Assembly (NCBI RefSeq): GCF_001194135.2
Contig: NC_068987.1
Location: 54,274,530-54,338,529, forward strand
Source: Octopus bimaculoides
Taxonomy: Eukaryota
Length of the DNA stretch: 64,000 nucleotides
Direction: 5' to 3'
The first letter of the stretch is position 1, and each line of letters begins with the position of its first letter. Position numbers and translations under genes: made by a program. The notes under the pieces were generated by a model that did no database searches, was not told the DNA's origin, and saw only the letters and a program-made list of their open reading frames with translations. Positions 1 to 59,859 of this stretch are shown here, one piece after another.

Positions 1-202
1 GTGGTGGTGGTGGTGGTAGTATTGATATTGAGGTTGACAATGACGATGATGACAACGAAGACGATAGTGACAGCGACGACGATAACGACGACAGCGACGA
101 CACGGATGACGACGGTGATGATACGACGACAATGATGACGATGATGATGATGACGACGACGACGGCCACGACGACAACGACGACGACGGCCACGATGACG
201 AT

Positions 203-234
<32 letters not shown>

Positions 235-285
235 TGACGATGATGATGATGACGATGATGGTGGTGGTGACAATGATGATGAAGC
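1..285. repeat. Imperfect (GAC/GAT/GGT)n trinucleotide repeat
   Basis: Seen directly; overlaps the 3' part of the minus-strand ORF. Confidence 0.9.
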
Positions 286-1210
286 CATCGAAAAATTCCG
301 ATAACGAACCAGCAGTACATTTCATCATTCTATAATGTTCCTTCAATTCCTTGCAGAGAAAAGTAGAAATTCTTTCGATTTTGTTCTGTCCTTCTTTAGG
401 GTTGTCTACTGGATTCTGCTCGTTGGAATCTGGAACGTCCGATGATAAAGATGCTTCCACGATTTCCGTCATAATCCGATGATGTACGTCTGTCTCTTTC
501 TTGCGGCACAGATTTTCGACTTCCAACAGGAATTTATTGCGATCTTTCTCAAATGTATAACTGTCTATATAATCGGATTTGAGTAAGGAATTAGGTCTCC
601 GATAGAAAACTTCGTGAAGATATGAAGATTCTGAGTGAGACCGCAAGAAAGACGGAGCCACACTAATCTGTTTCCGCTTTAGATGGCCACCCAGCAATAT
701 GAACGGGTTTTGATGTAGTTGATGACTAACTTGTGTAGAAGATTTATCAGAATTCTCTGAAGTACATTCTTTTTGGCTACTTTCAAAAGAAAATTTATGG
801 TTCTGTATTGGATTGTATGTTGAAATGTCTTCGTCTAATATTGCTGCACTTTGAAAAGAAGCTGACCTAAACATGGACTCATGTCGGTGATTGCCAGAGT
901 TTAGGACATAAGGGAAATCATACTTTAAACATCTATCCATTTCTTCGTAGCTGTTTTCAGTCTCAGCGTCTGAAGAGTTCTCATCACTTACCTGACAAAT
1001 TTTATCATCAAGAGAATCTTCACTCGATTGATCGATCGTATTTAATTGTAATTCAGAAGAAGACTGGATGTTCGTAGATTTTAACACAATTTTATCTAAA
1101 ATATGTTCAACAAAAGAGGCAGCAAAACTAGACAAGTCTGTATTTGATGAACTTGTCTGTAGTGGAGGTTCTTTGCACATTGAGAAATGAGTCTTTTCCG
1201 AAGACGACAT
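1..1210 (-). CDS. Unknown protein-coding exon/ORF, at least 403 codons, open past the window edge (MSSSEKTHFSMCKEPPLQ...ELKEHYRMMKCTAGSLSEFFDGF, then a repeat-encoded Val/Ile, Ser and Pro tail)
   Basis: Manual minus-strand translation shows no stop from the ATG at 1210-1208 down to position 1, with an in-frame TGA upstream near 1307. About 310 codons are non-repetitive, Ser/Glu/Asp-rich sequence, which is unlikely by chance at this AT content. No family recognised. Confidence 0.6.
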
Positions 1211-1615
1211 TCTTTGTGCACTTATAGTTCTGGTTAATTTTTTCGGTACAAGTGTACGTTTTGAACACAACGGTCGCCAGAACGAACCAAAATATGCCGT
1301 GTTATATCAGTAATTTAAACATCAAAAGCAAGAAAAATGTTCGGGCGTTTTATTTGCGCTGCTTCAACGCCGAAGTTTCACACGCTGTCGGCACAACATT
1401 TCAGACGTTCGTCACGAGGAATCTAGCAGAGTATTATGAAGAAATTTTACACACTATTTGAAACAAAGCATGGCTGTATGATTAATAAAAACAAATCGCT
1501 TCTGAACCATTGGGTTTTAGGTTCAGTCATACTATAAGGTAACTTGAGTAAGTATTTCTTTGATAGCCTTGGATTGGTCAATATCTGATGAGCAAAATAC
1601 AGTAAGCAGAAACTC

Positions 1616-1647
<32 letters not shown>

Positions 1648-1668
1648 TGTGTGTGNNNNNNNNNNCTC

Positions 1669-1700
<32 letters not shown>

Positions 1701-1704
1701 TGTG

Positions 1705-1736
<32 letters not shown>

Positions 1737-1744
1737 TGTGTGTG

Positions 1745-1775
<31 letters not shown>

Positions 1776-1818
1776 ATGTGTGCGTGTGTGCATGTGTGCG
1801 TGCGTGCGTGTGCGTGTG
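1616..1818. repeat. (GT)n/(GTGC)n compound microsatellite with an assembly gap
   Basis: Seen directly; source of spurious CV/HT ORFs. Confidence 0.95.
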
Positions 1819-2487
1819 TAAGTTGCTCTACATTGGGGTACTATCTAAAAGCGTGTATCTCAAGGTAAACTTACCCATTTGGTATCCAGGGACTAGTTAA
1901 ATGAGTACCAGACTAGACTAAGTGCTGCGATTGATATAACAAACTAAAACCTTTGAAAGTGTTGCCCCAGCTTGGTCGCAATTCGGTGACTGAAAAAACA
2001 ATAAAACCAATAAAAGAAAAAAAATGCAACACAATTACTGAAATTTCAATTCAAGAATTTTCTTTTCAGCTTGTTATTGTTCTAGGGTATTCTTCAACAC
2101 ACACACCTTCTTGGATCTTCGGGCTCTGTGGCTGAGGTACTATTTGAGCCCCTATCGCACAGACATTGGATATATCTTTCATCCTTCATCATTTACTTGT
2201 TTTAGTCCTTAGACTTCGGCCATGATGGGTCACCGTCTTGAAGAGAAGAGTTTATTCGAACAAATCGACCCCAGCGGTTTTTTTTTTTCTAAGCCTGATA
2301 TTAATTCTATCGTTTTCGTTTTACCGAATTGCTAAGTTACGAGAACATCCACAAACCAGCATCGGTTGTCAAGCAGTGGTGATGGGGACAAACACAAGTA
2401 CAAAGACGTACACACATAGATATATACGTACATTTACATACAAATACATATGTGAATATGTGTGTGTGAGTGTGTGCGTGCGTTGTT

Positions 2488-2527
<40 letters not shown>

Positions 2528-3364
2528 GTAGGTAGGTAGGTAGGCAGACAGACAGACAGATACATATGTTCTTTTTTTATGAATTAAGGTTAGGGTAAAT
2601 TGAAATTCAGTTTTAAAAAATTGTAAAAATATCACCAAAATAATTTTATTGAATTCTAATTCGAGTTATAATCTTAATTTCCGGTTCTCCTCAATTTCAG
2701 CAACACATCAAACAACAAAAACAGCAACAAGATATCGAGTAAAACAACCACTGAAATTCATATGAAACAAAAAAATATGCTTTCATTACTTGTAATAGCT
2801 ATCATGGAACGACCGATTTCACGTTCCTTTTTGAAAACGAGGCGTAAAAGCATTCCACAACTCCTCCTTTTCAATGAGAAATTTAATCTACATGTTATGA
2901 AGATGACTGCCAGTAACCTACAGATTCTTATTCCTGGTGAGAGGCACATTCACCAACGTTTACTTTTTCCACACGTCGGCTTCGTCTTGATCGACATTGA
3001 AGAGAAGTCCACACTACTAGATGTGTAGTGATCACTGATTAGGAATAAATATGAAGCTCTTGATCCAAACGGACCAGGAGAGGTTCAAAATCATCTCTGA
3101 TTAGACTGACTTTTTTTCTTTTCTGTTTTGCTGAGTCTGGAGTAAAAGACAGTGCTCAAGACCTTTGCAGGTCCTCCAGGACCGGCGAAGGTGACACCGT
3201 TAATGTTCTGTTTAAACTACAGCAAGTCAACAGCTGCAGGAAAAAACATGAACAGCGAGATTTCAAAGAGTTGAAATTCTGTGGTGATAGAAGGAAGAAG
3301 ACCAAGTTGCCACATCTGTAAAGCTGCAAACCAACTGACGGTCTTCTGTGTACTGTGTGTTGGC

Positions 3365-3730
3365 ACTCCGTCGCTTACGACGTCGAGGGTTCCAGTTGAT
3401 CCGATCAACGGAACAGCCTGCTCGTGAAATTAACGTGCAAGTGGCTGAGCACTCCACAGACACGTGTACCCTTAACGTAGTTCTCGGGGATATTCGGCGT
3501 GACACAGTGTGACAAGGCTGACCCTTTGAATTACAGGCACAACAGAAACAGGAAGTAAGAGTGAGAGAAAGTTGTGGTGAAAGCGTACAACAGGGTTCGC
3601 CACCATCCCCTGCCGGAACCTCGTGGAGCTTTAAGTGTTTTCGCTCAATAAACACTCACAACGCCCAGTCTGGGAATCGAATCCGCGATCCTATGACCGC
3701 GGATCCGCTGCCCCAACCATTGCGCCTCCA
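3365..3730 (-). mobile_element. tRNA-derived SINE (family D; head TGGAGGCGCAATGG...GATTCGATTCCC)
   Basis: A-box/B-box-like head on the minus strand. A related body sequence recurs near 25060-25170. Confidence 0.7.
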
Positions 3731-4235
3731 TTTCTGTGTACTATGGATGGTATAAAGAAAGAAAACTCCTACTGCTGCTGATACCACAAACACAAACAAC
3801 AGCAGCAGCAATGTGCAATGACAGCAGCAGTACCAGTAACTGCAGCTGTAATAACAAAGCAGCAACAATAGCAGTAACAAAATTAACAGTATCAAAAACA
3901 GCAGCAGCAACAAAAATTCCAATCACAGCAGCCGTAAAACTACCGACAACAACACAACGACTCAGTAACACAATGTGTTACTTTGCTCCATTCTCCGCAA
4001 TGCACATACGTGCGAATACCTCTTCCCTATCATTTGCTTCAGAAATCAATCTCAGATACACGTGAAAAAGCATGCTACAGAAGTCCATCGTAAAAAAGAA
4101 ACATAAAATTTAACGAGGGTCACCCTAAGCAGAAACCTGAAAAGCTCAAAGGATTAATGGAGGAGCATTTTTCAACCATCCACGTAGTCACACCACCAGA
4201 TCCAGCACAGCAACACCACCAGTATTACAACGTCA

Positions 4236-4380
4236 TCCGTCTTTACGTTCTGAATTCAAATTCCACCGAAGTCGACTTTGCCTTTCATCCATTCGGGATC
4301 TATAAGATAAGTACCAGTTGAGCACTGGAGTCGATGTAATTGACTTACCCCCTCCCCCAAAATTGCTGGCCTTGAGCAGC
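4236..4380 (+). mobile_element. tRNA-derived SINE family B, 5'-truncated
   Basis: GTTCTGAATTCAAATTCCACCGAAGTCGACTTTGCCTTTCATCC is shared with the copies at 26909, 30038, 41010, 41217 and 57414. Confidence 0.75.
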
Positions 4381-4662
4381 AAAATGGCAGAGTCGTCGGA
4401 GCGGCAGATTTATTCCGAGTTTTTGTGCTCTTAGTTCAAATCCCGACGAGGTCGGTTTTTTCCTTTCATCAACAACAGGAAAACTTTCGAAAGCATCGAC
4501 AACCGAAGAAAATGAAACAACAACGGCGGTGCCCCAGCATGGCCACATCTCACGAGCTGAAACTAGTAAAAGACGAAGAAAAAAGAGTAAATTCCAACAA
4601 CACGTCCAAAAGTTAATCACGCCATAACTATCCTTCATCATTTTCCCCGATATAAATAAATA

Positions 4663-4877
4663 CGAGTGTACTGAAAATTTCCTGGCTTTGGGTAAAAGCA
4701 AATGCAGAAGTATCAGTTAATCATGATTTTATTCAACATATTCCCCTCTCAGATTCACACATTTATTGCAATGGTCCTTCAGTACTTCTAAGCCCTGTAA
4801 AAGATTTCGGGATATTGGGCCTCCAGCCAAGCCTTTCGCGAAACCCTTAAAGCCAGAAACTTTTCGGCACCCCCTCG
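4663..4877. mobile_element. About 215-bp mariner-type MITE, copy 1
   Basis: TIRs CGAG(G)GTGCTGAAAAGTTCCTGGCTTT-like, TA flanks at 4661-4662 and 4878-4879. Three more copies in the window. Confidence 0.85.
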
Positions 4878-5464
4878 TACAACAGAGATATAATAACTAG
4901 AAAGAGACAAAAGTTCGAGATGCTTGTCCACAGCTTGTCACCTCGTAAAAGAAATGAAAATCATCCACAAACAATTATTAGAAATGTTTTCTAAAGAAAT
5001 ATCTTTAAATGAAAAGTAATGGGGAGCTTCCAGAACAGAGCTGACAAAAGACTTTTGGACAAGCTTTTCGAGGAACGCGAGTCAACTGCTGGGAAAACCG
5101 GATCACCTGTCTTTCCACATGTTTAAGTTATGTAATCTTTTTCACCCCGCCCACCCCTGCATTTTTTTTTTATCTGTATTACTGATAAAATATAAATGTA
5201 CCTGACCTGGGACTACCTTGAAAGCAACATCCAAAAGCACTGGATATACAGTTGTGAGCAAAAGTTTTGAACGTAGGTTTGAAAATTAGGATTTTTATAT
5301 TAAATGCCCAAATTATATTTACTTTGCAATATATTATTACTTGACCAATTTGGAATATAGGTCTGAAAATTATCAAGTATATCTCTACATTGTATATATT
5401 TGAATCAAATTGTACTTGGGCATAACAATTTTAATTTTTTTCTTTTAAATGTTCCAACTTTTGG

Positions 5465-6400
5465 GCATGACTATAATACCACAAGGTTTCCGTGTTGCAT
5501 CACTCGCAGCTATCCTCGATGACTACGAGATATACTGGTCTTGGATCAGGATGCCGAATGGTAGATGTTTCGGAGTGTTTCAGATCTGAAGGTGCGACCG
5601 ATTTTCTGAACCGGAATGGTAAGCCGGTGGTCCGGGAAGTGGACCGCTGCGGAAGTAGTACTTTGAAGCAGTGGCTATGATCCGAAACGGTCAAGGATGA
5701 TGGATTTCTCCAGACGTCTCGAAGCTTTTTGGGGGGACATTTTGCTCTTTAGTACTGTGCAAGACATAAATGTCATTTTAGACGCACGTTAGAATTGTGA
5801 GGGGTTATCAAGTAGAAAAGTGCGATGTAAAAACTCGCAAACTAACCCAAACAATTCCAACAGCCTAACGTGTACCGACTGGTCGCACCAAATATAGTAG
5901 TGTGAACATGGAGCAATTGCACCGGGACATCCAGATCGTATCTATCTAGGGTATTATTTGGGTCAACAGACGGGAACTATGAATAACATCAAGAAACGCC
6001 TGCCCTGGCAGTGCTGAGGGAGGAGATGGAGTTATTGCCTGAACGAGACAAACTCTACAATCGCGGGTCTATCCCGAAGTACCTTCAGTCTGACTTGTCG
6101 GAACAATGAACAATGAAATGCACTCGTTCAGTATCCAGGCATCACTGGACTGTGGAGGTATGTCGAATAGTTGCCATCGCGTGTTGGTCATATTCGACTA
6201 TCGTTCAAGTCCATGCCGAGGATCGCCCGCCGCCTTCTATGACTCTGAAAGGCAGGTACTTTCTCTTCCTGGAGGCTATGGTGAAACAGGTTATGTGGAG
6301 AACGAGACTGAAACGAATGAGGACGGACACTTTCCTCTGTGAGCTTTCATCAGCTTTTTCAAGTTTCGCTTGACAAGAAGGGTGAGTGAGCGGAAGGAGA
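5465..6400 (+). mobile_element. Degenerate L1/Tx1-like LINE ORF2 remnant (endonuclease plus C-terminal region, RT apparently absent)
   Basis: Frameshifted fragments resemble APE motifs (DINVILDAR; YRLVAPNIVV*TW...RSYLSRV), followed directly by LPERDKL and HWT/GLWRYVE-type C-terminal motifs. Family call is from recalled motifs. Confidence 0.6.
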
Positions 6401-7139
6401 AGTCCCACCACTACCACCACCACCCCGTACACTTATTGAGATGTGAGTGAGCGTGGTTAATGGGGCACGAATAGGCGAAACTACTTAAATATGTGCTTGC
6501 AGGTCGGCAGAAGTTAAACGAGTAAGGGCATTTTCCCTCCCCACTTGAAGGGATAACTTTTTTTTTTTTAGTTTTGTTGAAAGATAGCTCCTTTGATTGA
6601 CCTTCGTAGCTGTTTTTGTTGTTTTGTTTCTATTATTTTGGGGGGGGGGATTTTTATTTATTGAAACACTCTTGTTATCTTTTGCTTATGTTATTCTTTT
6701 TTTTTTATTCACTTTAGGCAAATCTTCCCTTGTATAGCATCTTCTCTTTTTATCTACTCTCCCTCTTTTTTTAGCCCTTGTGGCAGAGAAAAAGTTATCA
6801 AGACTGTAGATTGACAGAACTGTTAGAGTGTCGAATAAAATGCATTCTGGTATTTCTTCCGATACTTAACGTTCTGAGTTCAAATTCAATCATTTATCTC
6901 TTCGAGATCGATAAAATGAAGAGCCAATCAATTACTAAAATCAATGTTATCGACAAACCCGCTTCCTTCAGAAATGCTGGCCTAGTGCCTAATTTAAAAA
7001 ATTATTATCATCGTTGTTTTCAGTGGTGTTTTCTTAGCTATTTTACTCTTGCATGTCTTATTCAATAAAATCCAAATGAGAAATGGAATAAAAGTTACTG
7101 AGGGTACTGTTTTCCAGTAACACCGGCCCTGCTTTTAAA

Positions 7140-7215
7140 ATGGCCATGCGTAACAACACACTTCGCGTGTTGGAGTTATATAGCGGTATAGGGGGAATGC
7201 ATTACGCTTTACAAG
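7140..7215 (+). CDS. TRDMT1: TRDMT1 exon 1 ([25 protein letters not shown])
   Basis: ATG at 7140 (second in-frame ATG at 7146), motif I, donor G|GTAAGA at 7216, phase 1. Confidence 0.95.
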
Positions 7216-10353: not shown

Positions 10354-13300
10354 NNNNNNNNNNGTCCAATAATACTATCCATATCACGTCCTCACTTTGT
10401 TGTTTTTTTGTTTTTTTGTTATTGTGTTTTTGAACTATATATATATATATATATATGTATACAACAGGTTTCTTTTTAGTTGTACACACACATACACAAT
10501 TGACTTATTTCAGTTTCCATCTACCAAATCTACTCTCAAGGCTTTGGTCAGCCTGAGGCTATAGTAGAAGACATTTGCCCAAGGTACCACACAGTGGAAC
10601 CAAAGCCAGAAATATCTGGTTAGGGAGCAAGTTTTTTATCACACAGCTACACCTGTGCTTATATATAGAAAGATGTAGCACAATAGTTGTAAGAGATGAG
10701 TAAATTTCTCTGTTGTCTTCTCCAGGCTTATTTTATGATTTAAGCTGACAGGCATGGCTGTGTGTGATGTCGAAGCTCACTTCCCAGTCACATGCTTTCA
10801 GGTTTAGCACCACATTTGCTCAAGATGCCATGCAGTGGCACTTTGAGCAAATGTCTTCTACTAAAGTAGCATAGTTATTTACCAATTGAGATTATTTTCA
10901 TTTCCTTTCATTTCAGCTACTTATCTGTTTGTATATCTATTGGTATATCTCTTTATCTGTTGATATGGCTGTAGACACAACCTACATATCTATTTATCCA
11001 GCCATCCTTCCTTCCTTCCTTTTGTCTTTCCCGCCTTCCTTCCTTTCCTGTCTGCTGGTATATGAATCTGTCTCCTCTCATAATACCGATAAGCATTTAA
11101 ACTTAATAACAAAAAGAAATAAATAAAAAATTAATAATGGTGGTGGCATCCCTGCATAGCCACAGCCTCTAGTCTTGAACAAGTTAAATATAAAAGTGTA
11201 ACATCCACAGCTATTTGCTAACTATCATGCTTGAGAAGAACCATTAAGCCAAGTGAAATCATTGTTGTGGACATTGTTGGTGTCACATATCTGGCATCGA
11301 TGCTGGTGGCACGTAAAAGGCACCTTTCGAGTATTGAGCCTCACTGAGGCAATGTTGCCAATGCCAGTGTCTCAGAATGGTTGGCGTTAGGAAGGGCACC
11401 CACCTATAGAAACCAGACCAAATCAGATTGGAGTTTGGCGCAGCCCCTCAGCTTACCAGCCCTGGTCAAACCATCCAACCCATGCCAGCATGGACGACGG
11501 ACACTAAATAATGATGATGATGATGATGATAATGATGATATATATATACATATATATAAAACTTTCTCCATTTGAGTTATTACCTCCTTTGATGTAGAAA
11601 CAAGCAGAATCCTACATTTTTTAAACTGAAAGATAAATATTAGATTTGTTATAAGGTCACTGGATAATAACAACACCAGCACCTGTCCTAGTACTGTTAG
11701 TCTCTATATTGCTAGCAAGAAGATGAGTTGCTGCTACCTCTAGCAGTTGAACATTCCTCATTGACAAGATCAAGGTTGAAATCACATGATCTGGTGGTCT
11801 TAGTGCTGGAGGTGGCAGGGATTTATCTCCCCACTAGCGATATAAGCTAGAGTGCATTTTGCACCCAAAGCCAATATGAGTTTCTCTCATGGTATCTACC
11901 GCAGTATAGTTTGTTCTAACAGAACATCCACATTTAAGTGGGGATAAATATTACTTCTCAGTATCAATGCTGCCTCTGTCACTAATAAATATTATTTATC
12001 TTAAGCAAGAATCTATTTCATACATGTCTTGCATTCATGTGACCATGTGGGTTCAGTTCCACTGCGTGGCACCTTGGACAAGTGTCTTCTGCTATAGCCT
12101 CGGCCAACCAAAGCCTTGTGAGTGAATTTGGTAGATGGAAACTGAAAGAAGCCCGTCGTATATATATATATATATATTTTTTTTTTCTCTGTTTTTCTCT
12201 TTGTTTTCTCCGTATTCTTTCTGTTGAAGAGTGTAGCTCGAAATGTTAATGAATTCCCCTATTCCCAAGCGTTAAACTAATACATCCTTTTGTTGTTTAC
12301 ACCACCTGTCCTCGTCTGTTGTTGTTTTTTTCGTAAATTCTCCCATATATATATATATGTGTTTGTGTGTCTGTGTTTGTCCCCCGCCAACATCGCTTGA
12401 CAACCGATGCTGGTGTGTTTACGTCCCCGAAACTTAGCAGTTCGGCAAAAGAGACCGATTGAAAGAGTACTAGGCTTACAAAGAATAAGTCCTGGGGTCG
12501 ATTTGCTCAACTAAAGGCGGTGCTCCAGCATGGTCACAGTCAAATGACTGAAACAAGTAAAAGAGTGTATATATACACACACACACACACACACATGACA
12601 GAAGTAGATAGACACCCTTATAATCATTAAAATTTATTTAAATTTGAAATTATTCATTCTAATTATCTATTAATTGTTATAATGTGGACATTTAATATTT
12701 AGTAGACATGCCCTTTGCATTTTTCAATGCAAGGACCCTATTAGACAGGTTACTGATCAGATGGTGAATATTCTCTTGAGGAATTCCTTACCAAGTTTCA
12801 TGCAGTGATCTCAGAAGATCTGGCTTTGAAGATGCTTTCTTGTTCTTTTTTTGAAGTGTCCTGTCCATTATATCCCAGCGGTGTTCAATAGGGTTCATAT
12901 CTGGTAACTGGCTTGGCTATGGACGCTTTTTAATGCCATTCTCACCCAACAAATCTTTGGTCATTTTAGCCATGTGACAAGGAGCCCCATCTTCCATAAT
13001 TAAAGTCTTCTTTAATCATTTCACCACTGGAGAAGATTAGAAGGAGTCCTTTCTGCAATGTGGACATGTATTTATCTGAGTTTATGTATCCCTCACACTC
13101 CACCAGCACTGATCAACCATTGCTCCAAATTACTCCCCAGACCATCACAGAATAGCTGCCTTGTTTCATTATTGGCTGCAATCTTTTAACATCAAATTCT
13201 TGATCACAGAGTCTCCAGACTCACACTCAACCACAATCAGGAAATACAGCAAATCTGGACTCATCAGAGAATATGGCAGTGTCCCAAAATACTAGTGACT

Positions 13301-16300: not shown

Positions 16301-19300
16301 ATATCGTATCTCTTCCAAAAGTCTCAAAGTGTGATAGACTTGTCAAGGTCAGTTACAGCTATTGCTTGCTGCAGCATATGCTTCATATAGTAACACTTGA
16401 AGATAGCAATTATTCCCTGATCCATTGGCTGCAGAAGAGACATGGTGTTCGGAGGGAGGTATACGATGGTAACATTGGGGTCAAAATCTAGAATGTTTTG
16501 CAGGTAGTCAGGAGCATTATCTAAGAAAAGTAAAACCTTAAAAGGAATCCCCTTCTCCTTACCGTACTTCTCTGCTACTGGGATAAAATGATTGAAGAAC
16601 CAATCTTCAAAAGCAACAACAGTAACCCATGCTTTTGAATTAGCCATCCATACAACAAGGAGAGACGCCTTGAGTATGTTCCACAGGGCACGGGTGTTGT
16701 GTGCATGATACACAAGCAATGGCTTTAACTTAAAATCTCCTGCACAATTACCTCCCAACATAATGGTGACACGGTCTTTTGAGACCTTGCAGCCTGGAAT
16801 AGTTTTCTCCTCCTTGGAAATGAATGAACAGTCTGGCAATTTTTTTCCAATACAATCCAGTTTCGTCTACGTTAAAAATCTGTTCAGAAGAAACCTGTTT
16901 TCTTCAATGATTTTCTTAAATGCACTGGAAATTCCGCTGCTGCTTGTTCGTCAACTGATGCACTCTCACCTTGTTTCTTAATGGAGTGATAACTTCTTCG
17001 CTCCTTAAATCTCATGAACCATCCTTGACTTGCCTTGAACTCTACATCTTTCTCATCTGGATATTTTTTCTTCAAGTCCTCAAACAAAAGACAAGGCTTT
17101 CTCTTGAATGATTTCTTGACTAATAGTAGCACTCTGATGATTCAACCTAACAATCCAAAGAGAAAAAAGACTTTCCATTTCTTCAAAGATTTTGCCTCTT
17201 TTTTATTGACGACAGTATTCTTCATCCCCGGGGCTTCAGATTTGATATGTGCTAAAATCCTGTCCTTATTATGTACAATCGTCGATACAGTTGTCCAGAT
17301 CATCTCAAAAGATTGTGCAACTGCTACCACTTCTTCACCTTTTTCATGGCATTTTATCACAGCCAGTTTATCTTCCAGCATTATAGTATGACATTTAGCA
17401 CTTCACTATGAATTTTCTTAGGAGTAATGGGGGGCAAAAAATAAAGTCACAAATGAATGAGAATGAGAAAGGAGCCAATAAACAGACGTAAACAAATCTG
17501 AATTCAAAGCAATTGTGGGAATCATGAGTTACAACGATGCCGAACAGTAAATATTGGAACTACAGTGCAATATGAGCTCCCAAAAAAACGATAAATAAGA
17601 TAACACAGCTGATTTCATGATTTTGTTCACTAAGCTACGCTACTCTATGGTGTGTTTCTTAACATCTGCTGTATGCATTTTAATATGATTTTATATTATG
17701 CTTTTATTGTATTTATTATACAGTAACATGATTTTATGTGCTTTTAATGGTTTTCTAGTGATTTTACGATTCCAATATTTGTGGCAGACAGATGTGAAGT
17801 CAAGTAAAATGACTTAACTTGATTTTTATTTTACCATATATTATTTTTGAAAACCGACGTATAATCGAGAATGACTTAAATCAAAACGTTAAACCAAGGT
17901 ATACCTGTATATATATATCATCATCATCATCATCATCATTGTTTAACGTCCGCTTTCCATGCTAGCATGGGTTGGACGATTTGACTGAGGACTGGTGCAA
18001 CCGGATGGCTACACCAGGCTCCAATCTAATTTGGCAGAGTTTCTACAGCTGGATGCCCTTCCTAACGCCAACCACTCAGAGAGTGTAGTGGGTGCTTTTA
18101 CGTGTCACCCGCACGAAAACGGCCACGCTCGAAATGGTGTCTTTTATGTGCCACCTGCACAAGAGCCAGTCCAGGGGCACTGGCAACGATCTCACTTGGC
18201 TTACCGGGTCTTCTCACGCACAGCACATTTCCAAAGGTCTCGGTCAGTAGTCATCGCCTCGGTGAGGCCCAATGTTCGAAGGTCTTGCCTCACCATATAT
18301 TGGTGTTAGAAACGGCATCCAGCTGTAGAAACCAAGTGAAAACAGACTATGGAACCTGGTGTGGCCCCCGGCCTTACTAATTCCTGATAAGCTGTCCAAC
18401 CCATTCCACCATAGAAAATGGGCATTAAATGATGGCGGCAGCAGCTGCTGTTGCTGCTGCTGCTTCTTCTATTGAGACATTATGTTTCAGGATAAGTTAT
18501 AAATAAATTTAAGGTACCTGTGCACATCTCATAAGCACATCTTTAGCCTCACTTTGGAAATAGATTTTCTTGTTAAACCACAGGCCTCACTGAACGGAAT
18601 GAATAAAACAACAACAAAAACTCGACTACAATATTTGTAAATCTAAGTGAGGACACGTCACTTCAAAATGAAAAAAAACAATTTCAAAGTGAGCACATGT
18701 CACTTAAAAGTTACTTTACTTGATTTATTTAACCAAGATTATACAGAATGTAGAATCCAAGAATACATAATTAGAACTGTTCACAGAGAAGAGGAAAAAA
18801 AGATATCAGTGTCATTGCTACTGTGTCAAGCACTGAGGGACAGGTCCTTGTCAGAATCTCATAATTATACACAGAAGGCACAGTTTGTAAAGTTTCTTTG
18901 TCATTTAACTGAAGCATTTCTAGGCCATGAATATATCTGCATATTTGATCATTTGTCTGTTTACCATGGGATCAAAATTACCATACAGGACGCTTACCGT
19001 TGCTGTTTGAACCATCTGCTATTTGCCTACACTTTTAATCCCGCAGAGGAATGCTTTTCATGAATAAGATATACACTGTAATTAGAACTTTCTCCAGCAG
19101 ACATTTATGCAGAAGTAGTGGAACAGTCCTGCAAGTGTTACAAAAGTCTCAGATGGAGAGAATATTCTTAGAAAATTAGTGTTGAATGTCATTGGTGTGG
19201 TTAGCCCTGAAAAAGTTGGGAGTATTACGAGCCTGTATATGATGGCTGGGTGGTAAGAAGCTTGCTTCCTAAGTACATGGTTCTGGGTTCAGTCCCACTA

Positions 19301-49194: not shown

Positions 49195-50706
49195 GACAGG
49201 CTTCTTTCAGTTTCTCTCTGCCAAATCCACTCAAGGCTTTGGTCGGCCCGAGGCTATAGTAGAAGACACTTGCCCAAGGTGCCATACAGTAGAACTGAAC
49301 CCGGAACCATGTGATTTGTGAGCAAGCTACTTACCACACAGCCACTCATGTGTATGTGTCCCTGTGTTTGTATACATGTATATATATATATAAGATCGGA
49401 AGAGCGTNNNNNNNNNNGTTTTGATTATCATGAGGGTATAGCAGAAGATACTTGCCCAAGGTGCCATGAAGGGACTGAACCCAGAACCATGTGATTGGGA
49501 AGCAAACCTCTTACCACACAACACTGATATCAACAAATACATTAGTGTGCCTTTCCTTTTTTTTTGCTTTGGGTGTTATTTAAGGAAGAGTTGGCTACTA
49601 TTTCTAGCTGATTATACCACCACTTGTGTAGGGGCCTCCTGATTAACCTCACAATACTGTTAGAGTTTGTGTGTGTGTTTGGTTGTGGTGGGTTGCCACA
49701 GCTGTCAAGGGCTGAGAAATGGCACGCTTCTTGACATTCAACAATTCCATATCTTCCTTTACCTTCTTCCACTCCTGCCACCCCTGTAAGTCATACCCTT
49801 TCTCCTCCCTTGCTTGCTTCTCATCCTCACTTAAAGACAACAATATATGCTCCTCCACTTCTACCATCACCACCACAGCCACCATACAGGCACACATTCC
49901 AGAAAGAGGAAGGTTATGGCAGTAGTATATATGTATGTGTGTGTGTGTGTATATGTATGTCTGTCTGTCTATGTATGTATATATGTAACACTGTCCCTTT
50001 TCTGCCTGCTTCTTCCTTTTTTCTGCTCCTTCTTCCTTTTATCACCTCACCCACCATTTCAGGACTCCCATATGTTTGTATTTACAGTACATACATACAT
50101 AACTAAAGCCTTGGAGATATCATTCTATCTTCCCCTCATCTTCAACCCACCTTTTAATGGTTGGTGGGCACACTTAGAAAGTGTGTGTAAATATGTGGGT
50201 ATTTGCTTGTCTGGCATGTGGAGCGGGGGAGGGGGGTCCTGTTGCCAGGCATTAGTGTATCAACAGTCATGTGTCTTCATTCCCATGGCAGGAATATACA
50301 TTACCCTCACTCCTTTGGTTCATTCACAAACATGCACATCTGTTTACAAGGGAACATCTATCAATGATGATAGATGTGCATGTGTGTGTGTGTGTGTATG
50401 TATATGCTCTTTCTCTTTTACTCTCTTTTACTTGTTTCAGTCATTTGACTGCGGCCATACTGGAGCACTGCCTTTAGTCGAGCAAATCGACCCCAGGACT
50501 TATTCTTTGTAAGCCTAGTACTTATTCTATCGGTCTCTTTTTGCTGAACCTCTAAGTTACGGGGACGTAGACACACCAGCATCAGTTGTCAAGCGATGTT
50601 AGGGGGACAAACACAGACACACAAACACACACACACACACACACANNNNNNNNNNNNNNNNNNNNNNNNNNNNNNNNNNNNNNNNNNNNNNNNNNNNNNN
50701 NNNNNN

Positions 50707-51356: not shown

Positions 51357-53371
51357 ACAAGGGGGTGCTGCAAACTTCCTGGTTTTGAGTAAAAGAAAAT
51401 ACAGGAGAATCAGTTAATTATGATTTTATTCAACGTATTCCCCTCTCACATTCACACGCTTACACAGTGGTCCTTCAGTTTTTCTAAGCCCTGTAAAAGA
51501 ACTCAGAAGGTTGAGCCTCCAAACAGGCATTTCGTAATACCCAAAAAGTCAGGAACTTTTCAACACCCTTTGATATATATAGTTATGTATACATGTGTGT
51601 ATGAATATATACGTGCTTGTGTATATTTAAATGTGTGTGCATGTAAGCACACAGTACACTGTAAAGTGGTTGGTATTAGGAAAGGCTTCTGGCTGCAGAA
51701 AGCATGCTCCAAAGTCTACTTTGGCAGACATTGGAGCATGGCACAGTCCTCTGGTTCACATGAAAAACAGACATTAAATGATGGTGATGATATAAATACT
51801 GTAAAAACCCATATTGTTAAAAAAAAAACAGCCTCTACTCATGTAAAATTCACACCTAAAAGTTTTCAGAATTGCTGATATGACCAGGGGGAAAAAGTTT
51901 TCAGTTTAGTTGTATTTAGCATAATTTCACTTACTTATGATTAGGTTTTATTAAATCTTCATTAAATAAAAATAATTTCTGTTTAACAGGTATCGCATTG
52001 AAAGCTATTAGATTATGAAGTGTTTGTGCTGTTTATAATAAACTTTATTTTACATTTCTTGCCTACAAGAGATTATATCCAATCTTTAGCATACTTCTAT
52101 ATGCCTTCTCAAATCACAACCACAGGAAATATTGTTGATAATTCTTATAAACAAAAACAAAGCTGATAAATACGCACAAGTGTTGCAAAATAAGTTTAAT
52201 TACCGATAAACATCAGCTTGAATGACACTTTACTCAACTGACAGAGGAAGGTGACCAATCAAACTGATTATGCAAACAGAATTTTGACTGGTCGAAAGTG
52301 TCTTCTTGTCTCAAGCTCTGATTTTCTGCCTGTTCTTGTCGGAACCTTTGATATGGAGTATCGAAATTTTAATCCCTTTCACACTTATAAAATGTCAAGC
52401 AAGCTTAAAAATTTGTCATTACTGTTTTAGCCAGGAGACCAAACTGATAGTTTGGTAGCCCACTAAAATAAACATTAAAAATCAAAAGGAGAAAATAAAC
52501 AGCTTTGCAAGTTTAATTCAGGATTTATTGAACAAGAGAAGTGCGAAATTTAAGAAGTGATTTGTTGGAATATACATGTCTGTGAGGAGACATAAACAAG
52601 AATAGCAAAAACTCTACTATACCAAAAGAACTGGTATTATATACATTACAAGTGTTCTATGAAGAGAACATAAGATTGCTGCATAATTCAACATGAATGT
52701 CAAACGACATTAAACATTGTGTGAGGTAAATGAAGGTTTCTGTAGGAACACTAAGTCATATTCACTTAGTGAGTTTACATGCACAAGGATGAATTATGAT
52801 GTTGTCATCAGCCTTAGATACAGTAAGAGCTAGTAGTGGCGATGTCGGTGGTGACGAATTTCATTGTCCTAACACGGAGAAAGTGAACAATAGCTTCCTG
52901 AAGGTAAACTCACGCTAGACTTCTTAAGTGGAGAAAAACTGATCTATTTAAGGAAAATTGCTGGGCTCCGTTGCAATTAGTAGAAACTCCAAACAATGTA
53001 AAATATGGCCCAGACCATGATTACCTGCATGAACGTCAAACTTCAAAAAGTAGTTAACCATTTAATAGTTGTAGTAAATTTATACAGAAAACGCAAGCAT
53101 TATACCGTCCAGCATAAATAAAAGTCAACTTCGTTATATTTTTTATGTGAAAACCTATTCTGACATTAAATGAGTCAACTTCAAATGTGAATGTTTACAT
53201 TTGTACTTCATTTTTCAACAAAAATTGTTTTTTTAAATTCTGGAAATGATGTACTCATGTAATTTATGCACCCACTAAAGTTTATTTTTGTTTTTGTGAT
53301 AAAAAAAAGTGCATAAATTACATGGGGTTTTATGTATACACGCACACACACACACACACGCACGCACACAC

Positions 53372-56802: not shown

Positions 56803-57413
56803 CGTGAGNNNNNNNNNNNNNNNNNNNNNNNNNNNNNNNNNNNNNNNNNNNNNNNNNNNNNNNNNNNNNNNNNNNNNNNNNNNNNNNNNNNNNNNNNNNN
56901 NNNNNNNNNNNNNNNNNNNNNNNNNNNNNNNNNNNNNNNNNNNNNNNNNNNNNNNNNNNNNNNNNNNNNNNNNNNNNNNNNNNNNNNNNNNNNNNNNNNN
57001 NNNNNNNNNNNNNNNNNNNNNNNNNNNNNNNNNNNNNNNNNNNNNNNNNNNNNNNNNNNNNNNNNNNNNNNNNNNNNNNNNNNNNNNNNNNNNNNNNNNN
57101 NNNNNNNNNNNNNNNNNNNNNNNNNNNNNNNNNNNNNNNNNNNNNNNNNNNNNNNNNNNNNNNNNNNNNNNNNNNNNNNNNNNNNNNNNNNNNNNNNNNN
57201 NNNNNNNNNNNNNNNNNNNNNNNNNNNNNNNNNNNNNNNNNNNNNNNNNNNNNNNNNNNNNNNNNNNNNNNNNNNNNNNNNNNNNNNNNNNNNNNNNNNN
57301 NNNNNNNNNNNNNNNNNNNNNNNNNNNNNNNNNNNNNNNNNNNNNNNNNNNNNNNNACAGCCTTCCTGTCACCAAGCCCCGCCTGTTTGCAAGCAAGTTA
57401 ATCTTTCCCCAAG

Positions 57414-58257: not shown

Positions 58258-58870
58258 CAGATGTGGTGTGCAAGAGAGATGACTGTGCAGGTATGGTAAC
58301 TGTGGAGGAAGTCTGTGGTAGAGGTAGACCCAGGAAGACATGGGGCGAGGTGGTGAAGCATGATCTTCAAACTTTGAGCCTCACAGAGGCAATGATTAGT
58401 CACCGAGACCTTTGGCAATGTGTTGTAGTTGAGAGAACCTTTCAAGCCAAGTGCACCCGTGCTGGTAGTGCGTAAAGTACACCTTTTGAGCATTGGGCCT
58501 CACAGAGGCAAAGTGGTTGAGTTCCTTTCAAGTGCTGGGCCTCACAAAAGCAATGACCAAGACCTTTGGCATTATGTTGTGCTTGAGAAGAAGACCTGTC
58601 AAGCCGAGCAAAATTGCACTCAAGGCAGATATCGGTGTCGTGCAAATTGGCACATAAAAGCACCCTGGTGTCACACAAATGGCACTTATGCTGGTGATAC
58701 ATAAAAGCACCCATTACACTCTCAGAGTGGTTGGCATTAGGAAGAGCATCCAGCCATAGAAAACCATGCCAAATCAGACTGGATTCTGCTGCAGCCTTCC
58801 AGTGTACCAGCCCGGTCAAACTGTCCAACCCATGCCAGCATGGACAATGGACATTAAAGATGATGATGAT
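58258..58870 (+). mobile_element. RTE-type LINE 3' end with an internally duplicated ORF2 C-terminus
   Basis: ORF 58263..58475 contains CGRGRPRKTWGEVVKHDL; the GGCCTCACAGAGGCA segment is repeated; (ATG)n tail. Confidence 0.85.
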
Positions 58871-59859
58871 GATATATATGTGTGTGTATGTACGTATATA
58901 TGAATGCATACATACATTCATATATTATGTGTGTGTGCATATACACATGCATCTCTATGTTTGTGTTTGTCTTACGGAATTCATATTTCACTCATCTCCA
59001 CACCAGTTTACTGGTTGTAAACAATAGCCTCACTGATAGGTTTTATTTGTTTCCAGTTCTCCAAGTAAACATACCTATTTGTTACTCAATAGACTAGGAG
59101 ACAGGTTGTTCATTTTAGAAAGGGCATCCATTGTACTCGTTTCACCCACACAAGCATGGAAAAGGAGATATTAAAAATAATAATGAGGATGATAATTAAT
59201 ATCATATTGGAATCAAAACTAGGTCACAGATTTTGTTGCACAGGAACTGGTTTTTTTAATCATTCAAGTGGGTTAATGATTCTTTGTTTTCTCTTGCTTC
59301 TTGTTTCTTCTGAGTCAGTGATAAGAAAAAAAGCAATTAAATTTCTAAAAAAAATAGAAATTATATATACTGATAAAAATAAGGAATTCATTAAATACGA
59401 TAGGATTCATGTTACCACACCTACTCATTGTGTAATTAAGATCTTTGGCCTAGTTTGATGTGGGATAGAATTTATTTTGTTTTGTTTGTATTTGCTTTTT
59501 GCGGGGTGGGTTTATTATTATTATTATTATTAATTGTGTTACTGCCAGAATGTAACTGAAACAGATGCTGCATGGAAAGAAATAGATATTAAGCCAATAA
59601 TAATAATGCCATTAAAGATAAAGACATTGCTGATGGATGGTAGCTGGTGGAGGCAGCAGTTGCAGCATTGATAGTGAGGGTGAGGCTGATAGGGCAATGA
59701 TTATGTCCATGATTGTCATGGCAGAGGTTTTTATGATGACAAACTTGAAAAGAAGTGGGATTTTGTTAACCCTTTTGATACTAATCTGCATGAGACTATC
59801 TAATACTCTGTGGTAGAACCTTTTTGTTTTAAAGCTATTTGAAATAATAATGATGAACT

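Follow-up and report, generated by a model that had tools for sequence, protein, structure and literature searches.

A probable 300-codon first exon of an uncharacterised Octopus gene, head-to-head with TRDMT1 and prolonged in appearance by a microsatellite

The closest described counterparts of the sequence discussed here are uncharacterised gene models from three species of Octopus. In O. sinensis, LOC118764375 comprises seven coding exons extending over 57 kb and encodes XP_036360993.1, an uncharacterized protein of 523 aa. The O. vulgaris orthologue, CAI9726388.1, is a hypothetical predicted protein of 467 aa and originates from an annotation pipeline in which RNA-seq, Iso-Seq and ab initio predictions are combined. 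O. bimaculoides is represented by XP_014770759.1 (LOC106869506, uncharacterized), a C-terminal fragment of 156 aa covering exons 3-7. The gene itself is already known, since annotations of two sister species list it as uncharacterised and that of O. bimaculoides includes its C-terminal part; our search of the literature for the locus and accession identifiers found no paper mentioning them. In all three species, the region 5.9-6.8 kb upstream carries, on the opposite strand, a gene with the DNA_methylase domain (PF00145).

The window analyzed in the present work is a stretch of 64,000 nucleotides of O. bimaculoides DNA. On its minus strand, an ATG at window positions 1210-1208 opens a frame of 403 codons that runs without a stop down to window base 2. 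An earlier note on this DNA had reported such an open reading frame of at least 403 codons, made of about 310 codons of complex sequence rich in Ser, Glu and Asp and continuing through a trinucleotide repeat as about 55 Val/Ile residues, a Ser-rich run and poly-Pro; it also placed the start codon about 5.9 kb from that of TRDMT1, in head-to-head orientation. All these elements were recovered on the sequence, and the distance from ATG 1210 to the TRDMT1 ATG (7140, plus strand) was measured at 5,930 bp. Identity and synteny group the window frame with LOC118764375, LOC106869506 and CAI9726388.1. The features needed below, as read by comparison with the sister species, are the following (here and in the text, a slash marks an exon-intron border):

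310 to 1210, minus strand: very probable coding exon 1; 901 nt, that is 300 codons plus 1 base, with a phase-1 end; matches the sister-species models
304 to 309, minus strand: 5' splice site of intron 1, CTG/GTTCGT; the same in three species and used by both sister models
1 to 303, minus strand: read as the 5' part of intron 1, not coding; a microsatellite that ends at an assembly gap
1307 to 1309, minus strand: upstream in-frame TGA closing the frame 32 codons before the ATG, with no other ATG between
7140 to 7215, plus strand: first coding exon of TRDMT1/DNMT2, with its start codon at 7140, ending at gtaaga

From the upstream stop to the window edge, the stop-free run amounts to 435 codons and is the longest of the window, the runner-up reaching 225. 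The frame never closes within the window because an assembly gap begins immediately beyond window base 1. Window positions 7204 to 1 are 100% identical to positions 1 to 7204 of our locus L002 on O. bimaculoides chromosome CM046607.1, and extending the scaffold leftwards, as the earlier note had advised, leads directly past window base 1 into 2,312 N (L002 7205-9516). The edge of the gap is flanked by (GAY)n and (GGT)n microsatellites.

We hold with high confidence that window 1210-310 constitutes coding exon 1 of a real gene, spliced and protein-coding, so far found only in Octopus; the transcription, strand and donor use attributed to it in O. bimaculoides are inferred from gene models established by others in the sister species. 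The protein encoded by exon 1 is 95-96% identical to residues 1-300 of both CAI9726388.1 and XP_036360993.1, from which it differs by 12-14 amino-acid substitutions, and the nucleotide identity to both species amounts to 97.1-97.3%, ungapped over 901 nt. In both cases, protein similarity extends to ...MMKCTA and no further, the final complete codon ahead of base 310 being reached there. XP_036360993.1 and CAI9726388.1 have in common with the window frame the start codon, an exon 1 of 901 nt, the donor CTG/GTTCGT and the position divergent from TRDMT1. When the two sister models were reconstructed base by base, they translated to their proteins only with an exon 1 of 901 nt ending at this donor. 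The donor (nine bases at window 313-304) is weak and agrees with the consensus CAG/GTAAGT at 6 of 9 positions. One of the two options considered earlier placed the end of the exon at a weak donor, G/GTTCGT at 310/309; both sister models splice exactly there and the site is identical in the three species. In the sister species, the acceptor of intron 1 is TTGCTACAG/CC and is found 721-775 bp downstream of exon 1.

A perfect donor consensus, CAG/GTAAGT, is also present inside exon 1 (986 to 994, minus strand), where it covers codons 73-75 (QVS). This internal site, identical in the three Octopus species, is used by neither gene model, and a junction from it to exon 2 would disrupt the frame. It could serve as a cryptic or alternative donor, or simply be a chance occurrence.

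Past the weak donor, the frame runs into a (GAC/GAT)n trinucleotide microsatellite at about 36-282 (TRF arrays) and ends in a (GGT)n/(CCA)n run at 1-19. Its in-frame reading yields about 54 Val/Ile residues, the antisense of (GAC/GAT)n, then a Ser/Leu run and finally PPPPP. We read this tail as the start of intron 1, where the O. bimaculoides microsatellite is by chance free of stops in this frame. The other option raised earlier, the recruitment of the microsatellite as a hydrophobic, membrane-like coding segment, was not supported by comparison with the sister species. There, the frame continued past the donor closes at codon 351 (O. vulgaris) or 350 (O. sinensis), the in-frame TAA of these species being TCA at the matching place in O. 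bimaculoides. The intron start aligns at only about 64%, and 54 gap columns are needed. No conserved in-frame hydrophobic Val/Ile segment was found in these relatives, in which the region contains stops and is an annotated intron. It would still be conceivable that the whole frame of at least 403 codons is translated with its Val/Ile segment, constitutively or by intron retention: in O. bimaculoides no stop intervenes before the window edge, and a donor of such weakness makes some retention plausible. However, the repeat is about 100 bp (about 36 codons) longer in O. bimaculoides than in the sister species, and its composition varies as well, with FLLLL in O. vulgaris and long V runs in O. bimaculoides. 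Moreover, conservation of the downstream exons (dN/dS 0.09) presupposes that splicing takes place. The open frame itself carries no weight in favor of translation. The antisense of (GAY)n reads GTC/ATC, TCG/TCA or CGT/CAT and cannot hold a stop in any frame; the openness of the tail is therefore uninformative. Translation of the whole frame is thus regarded as highly improbable and would account at most for a minor product of intron retention, and the assignment of the tail to intron 1 is retained. The locus illustrates how an exon can be mistaken for a far longer ORF, complete with an exotic hydrophobic tail, when a trinucleotide microsatellite lies beside a scaffold gap.

The conservation of exon 1 stands out from that of the DNA around it. 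An alignment of the O. bimaculoides and O. vulgaris sequences shows 97.3% identity and 0 gaps over the 901 nt of exon 1. The 340 nt that precede it reach 86.5% with 18 gap columns, the intron start has the values given above, and the wider intergenic DNA stands at 88-91% with many gaps. Synonymous and non-synonymous differences between O. bimaculoides and O. sinensis were counted according to Nei-Gojobori, and the same bases read in the two shifted frames were taken as controls. Exon 1 offers 183 synonymous and 717 non-synonymous sites, and the counts are as follows (p values are binomial):

Exon 1, coding frame: 14 synonymous, 12 non-synonymous; dN/dS 0.21 (range 0.21-0.25); p 1.6e-4
Exon 1, shifted frame 1: 5.5 synonymous, 20.5 non-synonymous; dN/dS 1.06; p 0.53
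Exon 1, shifted frame 2: 2 synonymous, 24 non-synonymous; dN/dS 3.26; p 0.98
Exons 3-7: 11 synonymous, 4 non-synonymous; dN/dS 0.09; p 1.6e-5
All visible CDS: 25 synonymous, 16 non-synonymous; dN/dS 0.16; p 1.7e-8

The excess of synonymous changes in the coding frame of exon 1, when set against the shifted frames, indicates that this frame is under purifying selection as a protein, and the selection measured over all visible CDS suggests that the gene is probably functional. A dN/dS comparison across Octopus species had been proposed with the original observation, and it separates the ORF frame (0.21) from the two others (1.06 and 3.26); frame-breaking changes, the expected mark of a spurious gene, were found in exon 1 of neither O. 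vulgaris nor O. sinensis. These results bear directly on the proposal that annotation pipelines called coding what is in fact a non-coding transcript, a pseudogene or a chance ORF. Such an error would agree with the lack of any domain or of any homologue outside Octopus, with the mostly disordered structure predicted for exon 1 and with the fact that the O. bimaculoides annotation left exon 1 uncalled. The missing call is nevertheless accounted for by the assembly gap, and at the base composition of this DNA (38% G+C) only about 1e-5 stop-free stretches of at least 300 codons are expected by chance per strand. Added to the alignment of 901 nt without gaps between gapped flanks and to a synonymous excess specific to one frame and controlled by the others, this makes a non-coding origin very unlikely. 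An ORF derived from a transposon or a repeat deserves next to no credence: no transposase, RT or integrase domain appeared in the Pfam scans, each locus carries a single copy in the 64-95 kb of the three species, database matches are limited to three positional orthologues, and the position beside TRDMT1 is conserved. What can be said for it is that the surroundings are rich in repeats, among them a DDE_1 relic (16327-16866) and a dispersed repeat (3358-3726), but the search for a match between exon 1 and a transposon ORF, which the earlier note had named as evidence against a gene, returned none. The reading of window 1210-310 as the first exon of a protein-coding gene is therefore kept in what follows.

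Homologues were sought in two large protein collections. The 310-aa core, compared with 5.8 billion protein clusters, gave one match, CAI9726388.1, at 95% identity. With CAI9726388.1 as query, phmmer run exhaustively against 1.84 billion representatives added one extra cluster, composed of XP_014770759.1 and XP_036360993.1, and the two databases together contain three matching proteins, all of them Octopus positional orthologues. Neither the 5.8 billion clusters (two word-indexed searches) nor the 1.84 billion representatives contained a homologue outside Octopus. The proteome of the cuttlefish Sepia pharaonis is present in UniProt (PMC10700109). As far as the searched databases can show, the gene so far appears restricted to Octopus. 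The initial impression of a frame belonging to no recognizable family and possibly lineage-specific was borne out to this extent, with no match in Pfam or PDB and no relative beyond the genus, although the gene proved to be annotated already in the sister species.

The first exon described here is missing from the O. bimaculoides gene model. The CDS of XP_014770759.1 starts in exon 3, 3.1 kb downstream of exon 1 on the same chromosome, and lacks exons 1 and 2 along with 27 codons at the beginning of exon 3. Its annotated start Met corresponds to an internal Met of the sister-species proteins, and the conserved frame of exon 3 reaches 27 codons upstream of it in O. bimaculoides. Exons 3-7 were all found in this species with canonical AG/GT borders. 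Exon 2 (119 nt) gave no match by tblastn or blastn anywhere in locus L002, because the place where it should lie, 0.7-0.8 kb beyond the end of exon 1, is taken up by the N gap. The O. bimaculoides exon 2 would be a segment of 119 nt located about 0.7-0.8 kb from base 310, preceded by an acceptor ...CTACAG/CC and encoding (A)TGYQIGYDTATIHSKALIDELRTKEFMLDYFRRENHRMT. It is probably because the gap hides exon 2 that the O. bimaculoides annotation was limited to the 156-aa product. The practical consequence is a repair of the annotation: LOC106869506 would be 5'-truncated, with its true first exon (300 codons) at window 310-1210.

The two sister models do not entirely agree with each other. Compared with O. 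sinensis, the O. vulgaris model leaves out exons 3-4 (222 nt, without a change of frame) and terminates in a different exon, the terminal exon lying 31 kb downstream of exon 6 in O. vulgaris as against 45 kb in O. sinensis. O. vulgaris DNA carries exons 3-4 intact, at about positions 12687-12798 and 17336-17445 of the O. vulgaris locus (L001). The difference corresponds either to alternative splicing or to an error in one of the models.

The first 300 residues comprise 49 Ser, 28 Glu and 20 Asp and bear a net charge of -15. Pfam scans covering exon 1, full-length XP_036360993.1 and three sub-segments detected no family at threshold in any of these queries. Sub-threshold matches to YbjQ_2, RasGEF_N and Spc29 were taken as chance. 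The PI-PLC X domain (PF00388) was the sole family to recur in separate scans; it aligned with residues 214-278 (window about 377-571, minus strand) at 14-17 bits for a cut-off of 23.1 (E 0.005-0.03). Only the C-terminal half of this domain is matched, from profile position 75 to 138 of 144, and a PDB search with residues 212-300 retrieved no PLC. This match is most likely due to chance. The same residues 212-300 hit designer PPR proteins in the PDB (E 2e-5), at about 1 bit per repeat over 11 repeats, which was rejected as a repeat-summing artefact. A PDB sequence search with XP_036360993.1 found no relative, Cas2 (E 0.055) and a serpin (E 1) being considered as noise.

XP_036360993.1 was also modeled with AlphaFold2, from the single sequence and from a 4-row alignment, with mean pLDDT values of 38 and 42 that are too low for a fold search. 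The pLDDT remains below 50 for residues 1-236 and rises to 66-85 for residues 330-430, which are predicted as long helices. In these low-confidence models, residues 1-216 are unstructured except for an amphipathic helix at about 25-49, and long helices at 217-255, 270-380 and 389-441 precede a disordered C-terminal tail. Residues 217-441 probably form a coiled coil, to judge from the predicted helices. The combination of a disordered acidic N-terminus, which would probably be phosphorylated, with a coiled-coil core evokes a non-enzymatic scaffold or adaptor; we advance this as a tentative guess, less likely to be right than wrong.

The amphipathic helix invites a comparison with A-kinase anchoring proteins. 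The RII-binding helix of these proteins follows the degenerate pattern [AVLISE]xx[AVLIF][AVLI]xx[AVLI][AVLIF]xx[AVLISE]. Residues 30-45 (AASFVEHILDKIVLKS), situated in the predicted helix, fit this pattern, as do 12% of shuffled versions of exon 1, and no AKAP Pfam family was matched in our scans. The AKAP-like helix is a candidate to be treated as a lead only. A more ambitious reading would combine these elements into a taxonomically restricted octopod gene, absent from squids, cuttlefish and other animals, that is maintained by purifying selection and encodes a signalling scaffold made of a disordered phospho-acidic region and a coiled coil, whose N-terminal helix anchors PKA or another helix-binding partner. 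In a smaller variant of it, weak splicing of intron 1 would give rise in O. bimaculoides to an isoform carrying the hydrophobic tail encoded by the microsatellite. Taken jointly, the two are unlikely. Nothing that we found points to an unusual mechanism, and the gene, considered as protein-coding and restricted to Octopus, would be one of many such genes without an assigned function.

Several other features of the window were recorded along the way. Three open stretches of 160-225 codons, at 49835-50509 (plus strand), 51393-51875 (plus strand) and 58445-58924 (minus strand), gave no Pfam hit at E <= 0.01. Positions 1532-1900, in the interval that separates the gene from TRDMT1, are occupied by a long microsatellite of the (TG)n/(CACG)n type, interrupted by a gap of 10 N at 1656-1665, which yields several spurious Cys/Val and His/Thr ORFs. 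The window contains nine more N runs, the largest at 56809-57356. On the minus strand, the DDE_1 relic mentioned above is an open stretch of 180 codons whose translation matches PF03184 (DDE_1 transposase, E 2e-34); a pogo/Tigger-type transposon probably left it behind, and it likely sits in a TRDMT1 intron. The 370-bp segment at 3358-3726 is intergenic and has an inverted copy, 95% identical, at L002 43142-43510, in a downstream intron of the same gene; the existence of this second copy identifies it as a dispersed repeat. Part of it, from 3544 to 3726, aligns to O. vulgaris in reverse orientation.
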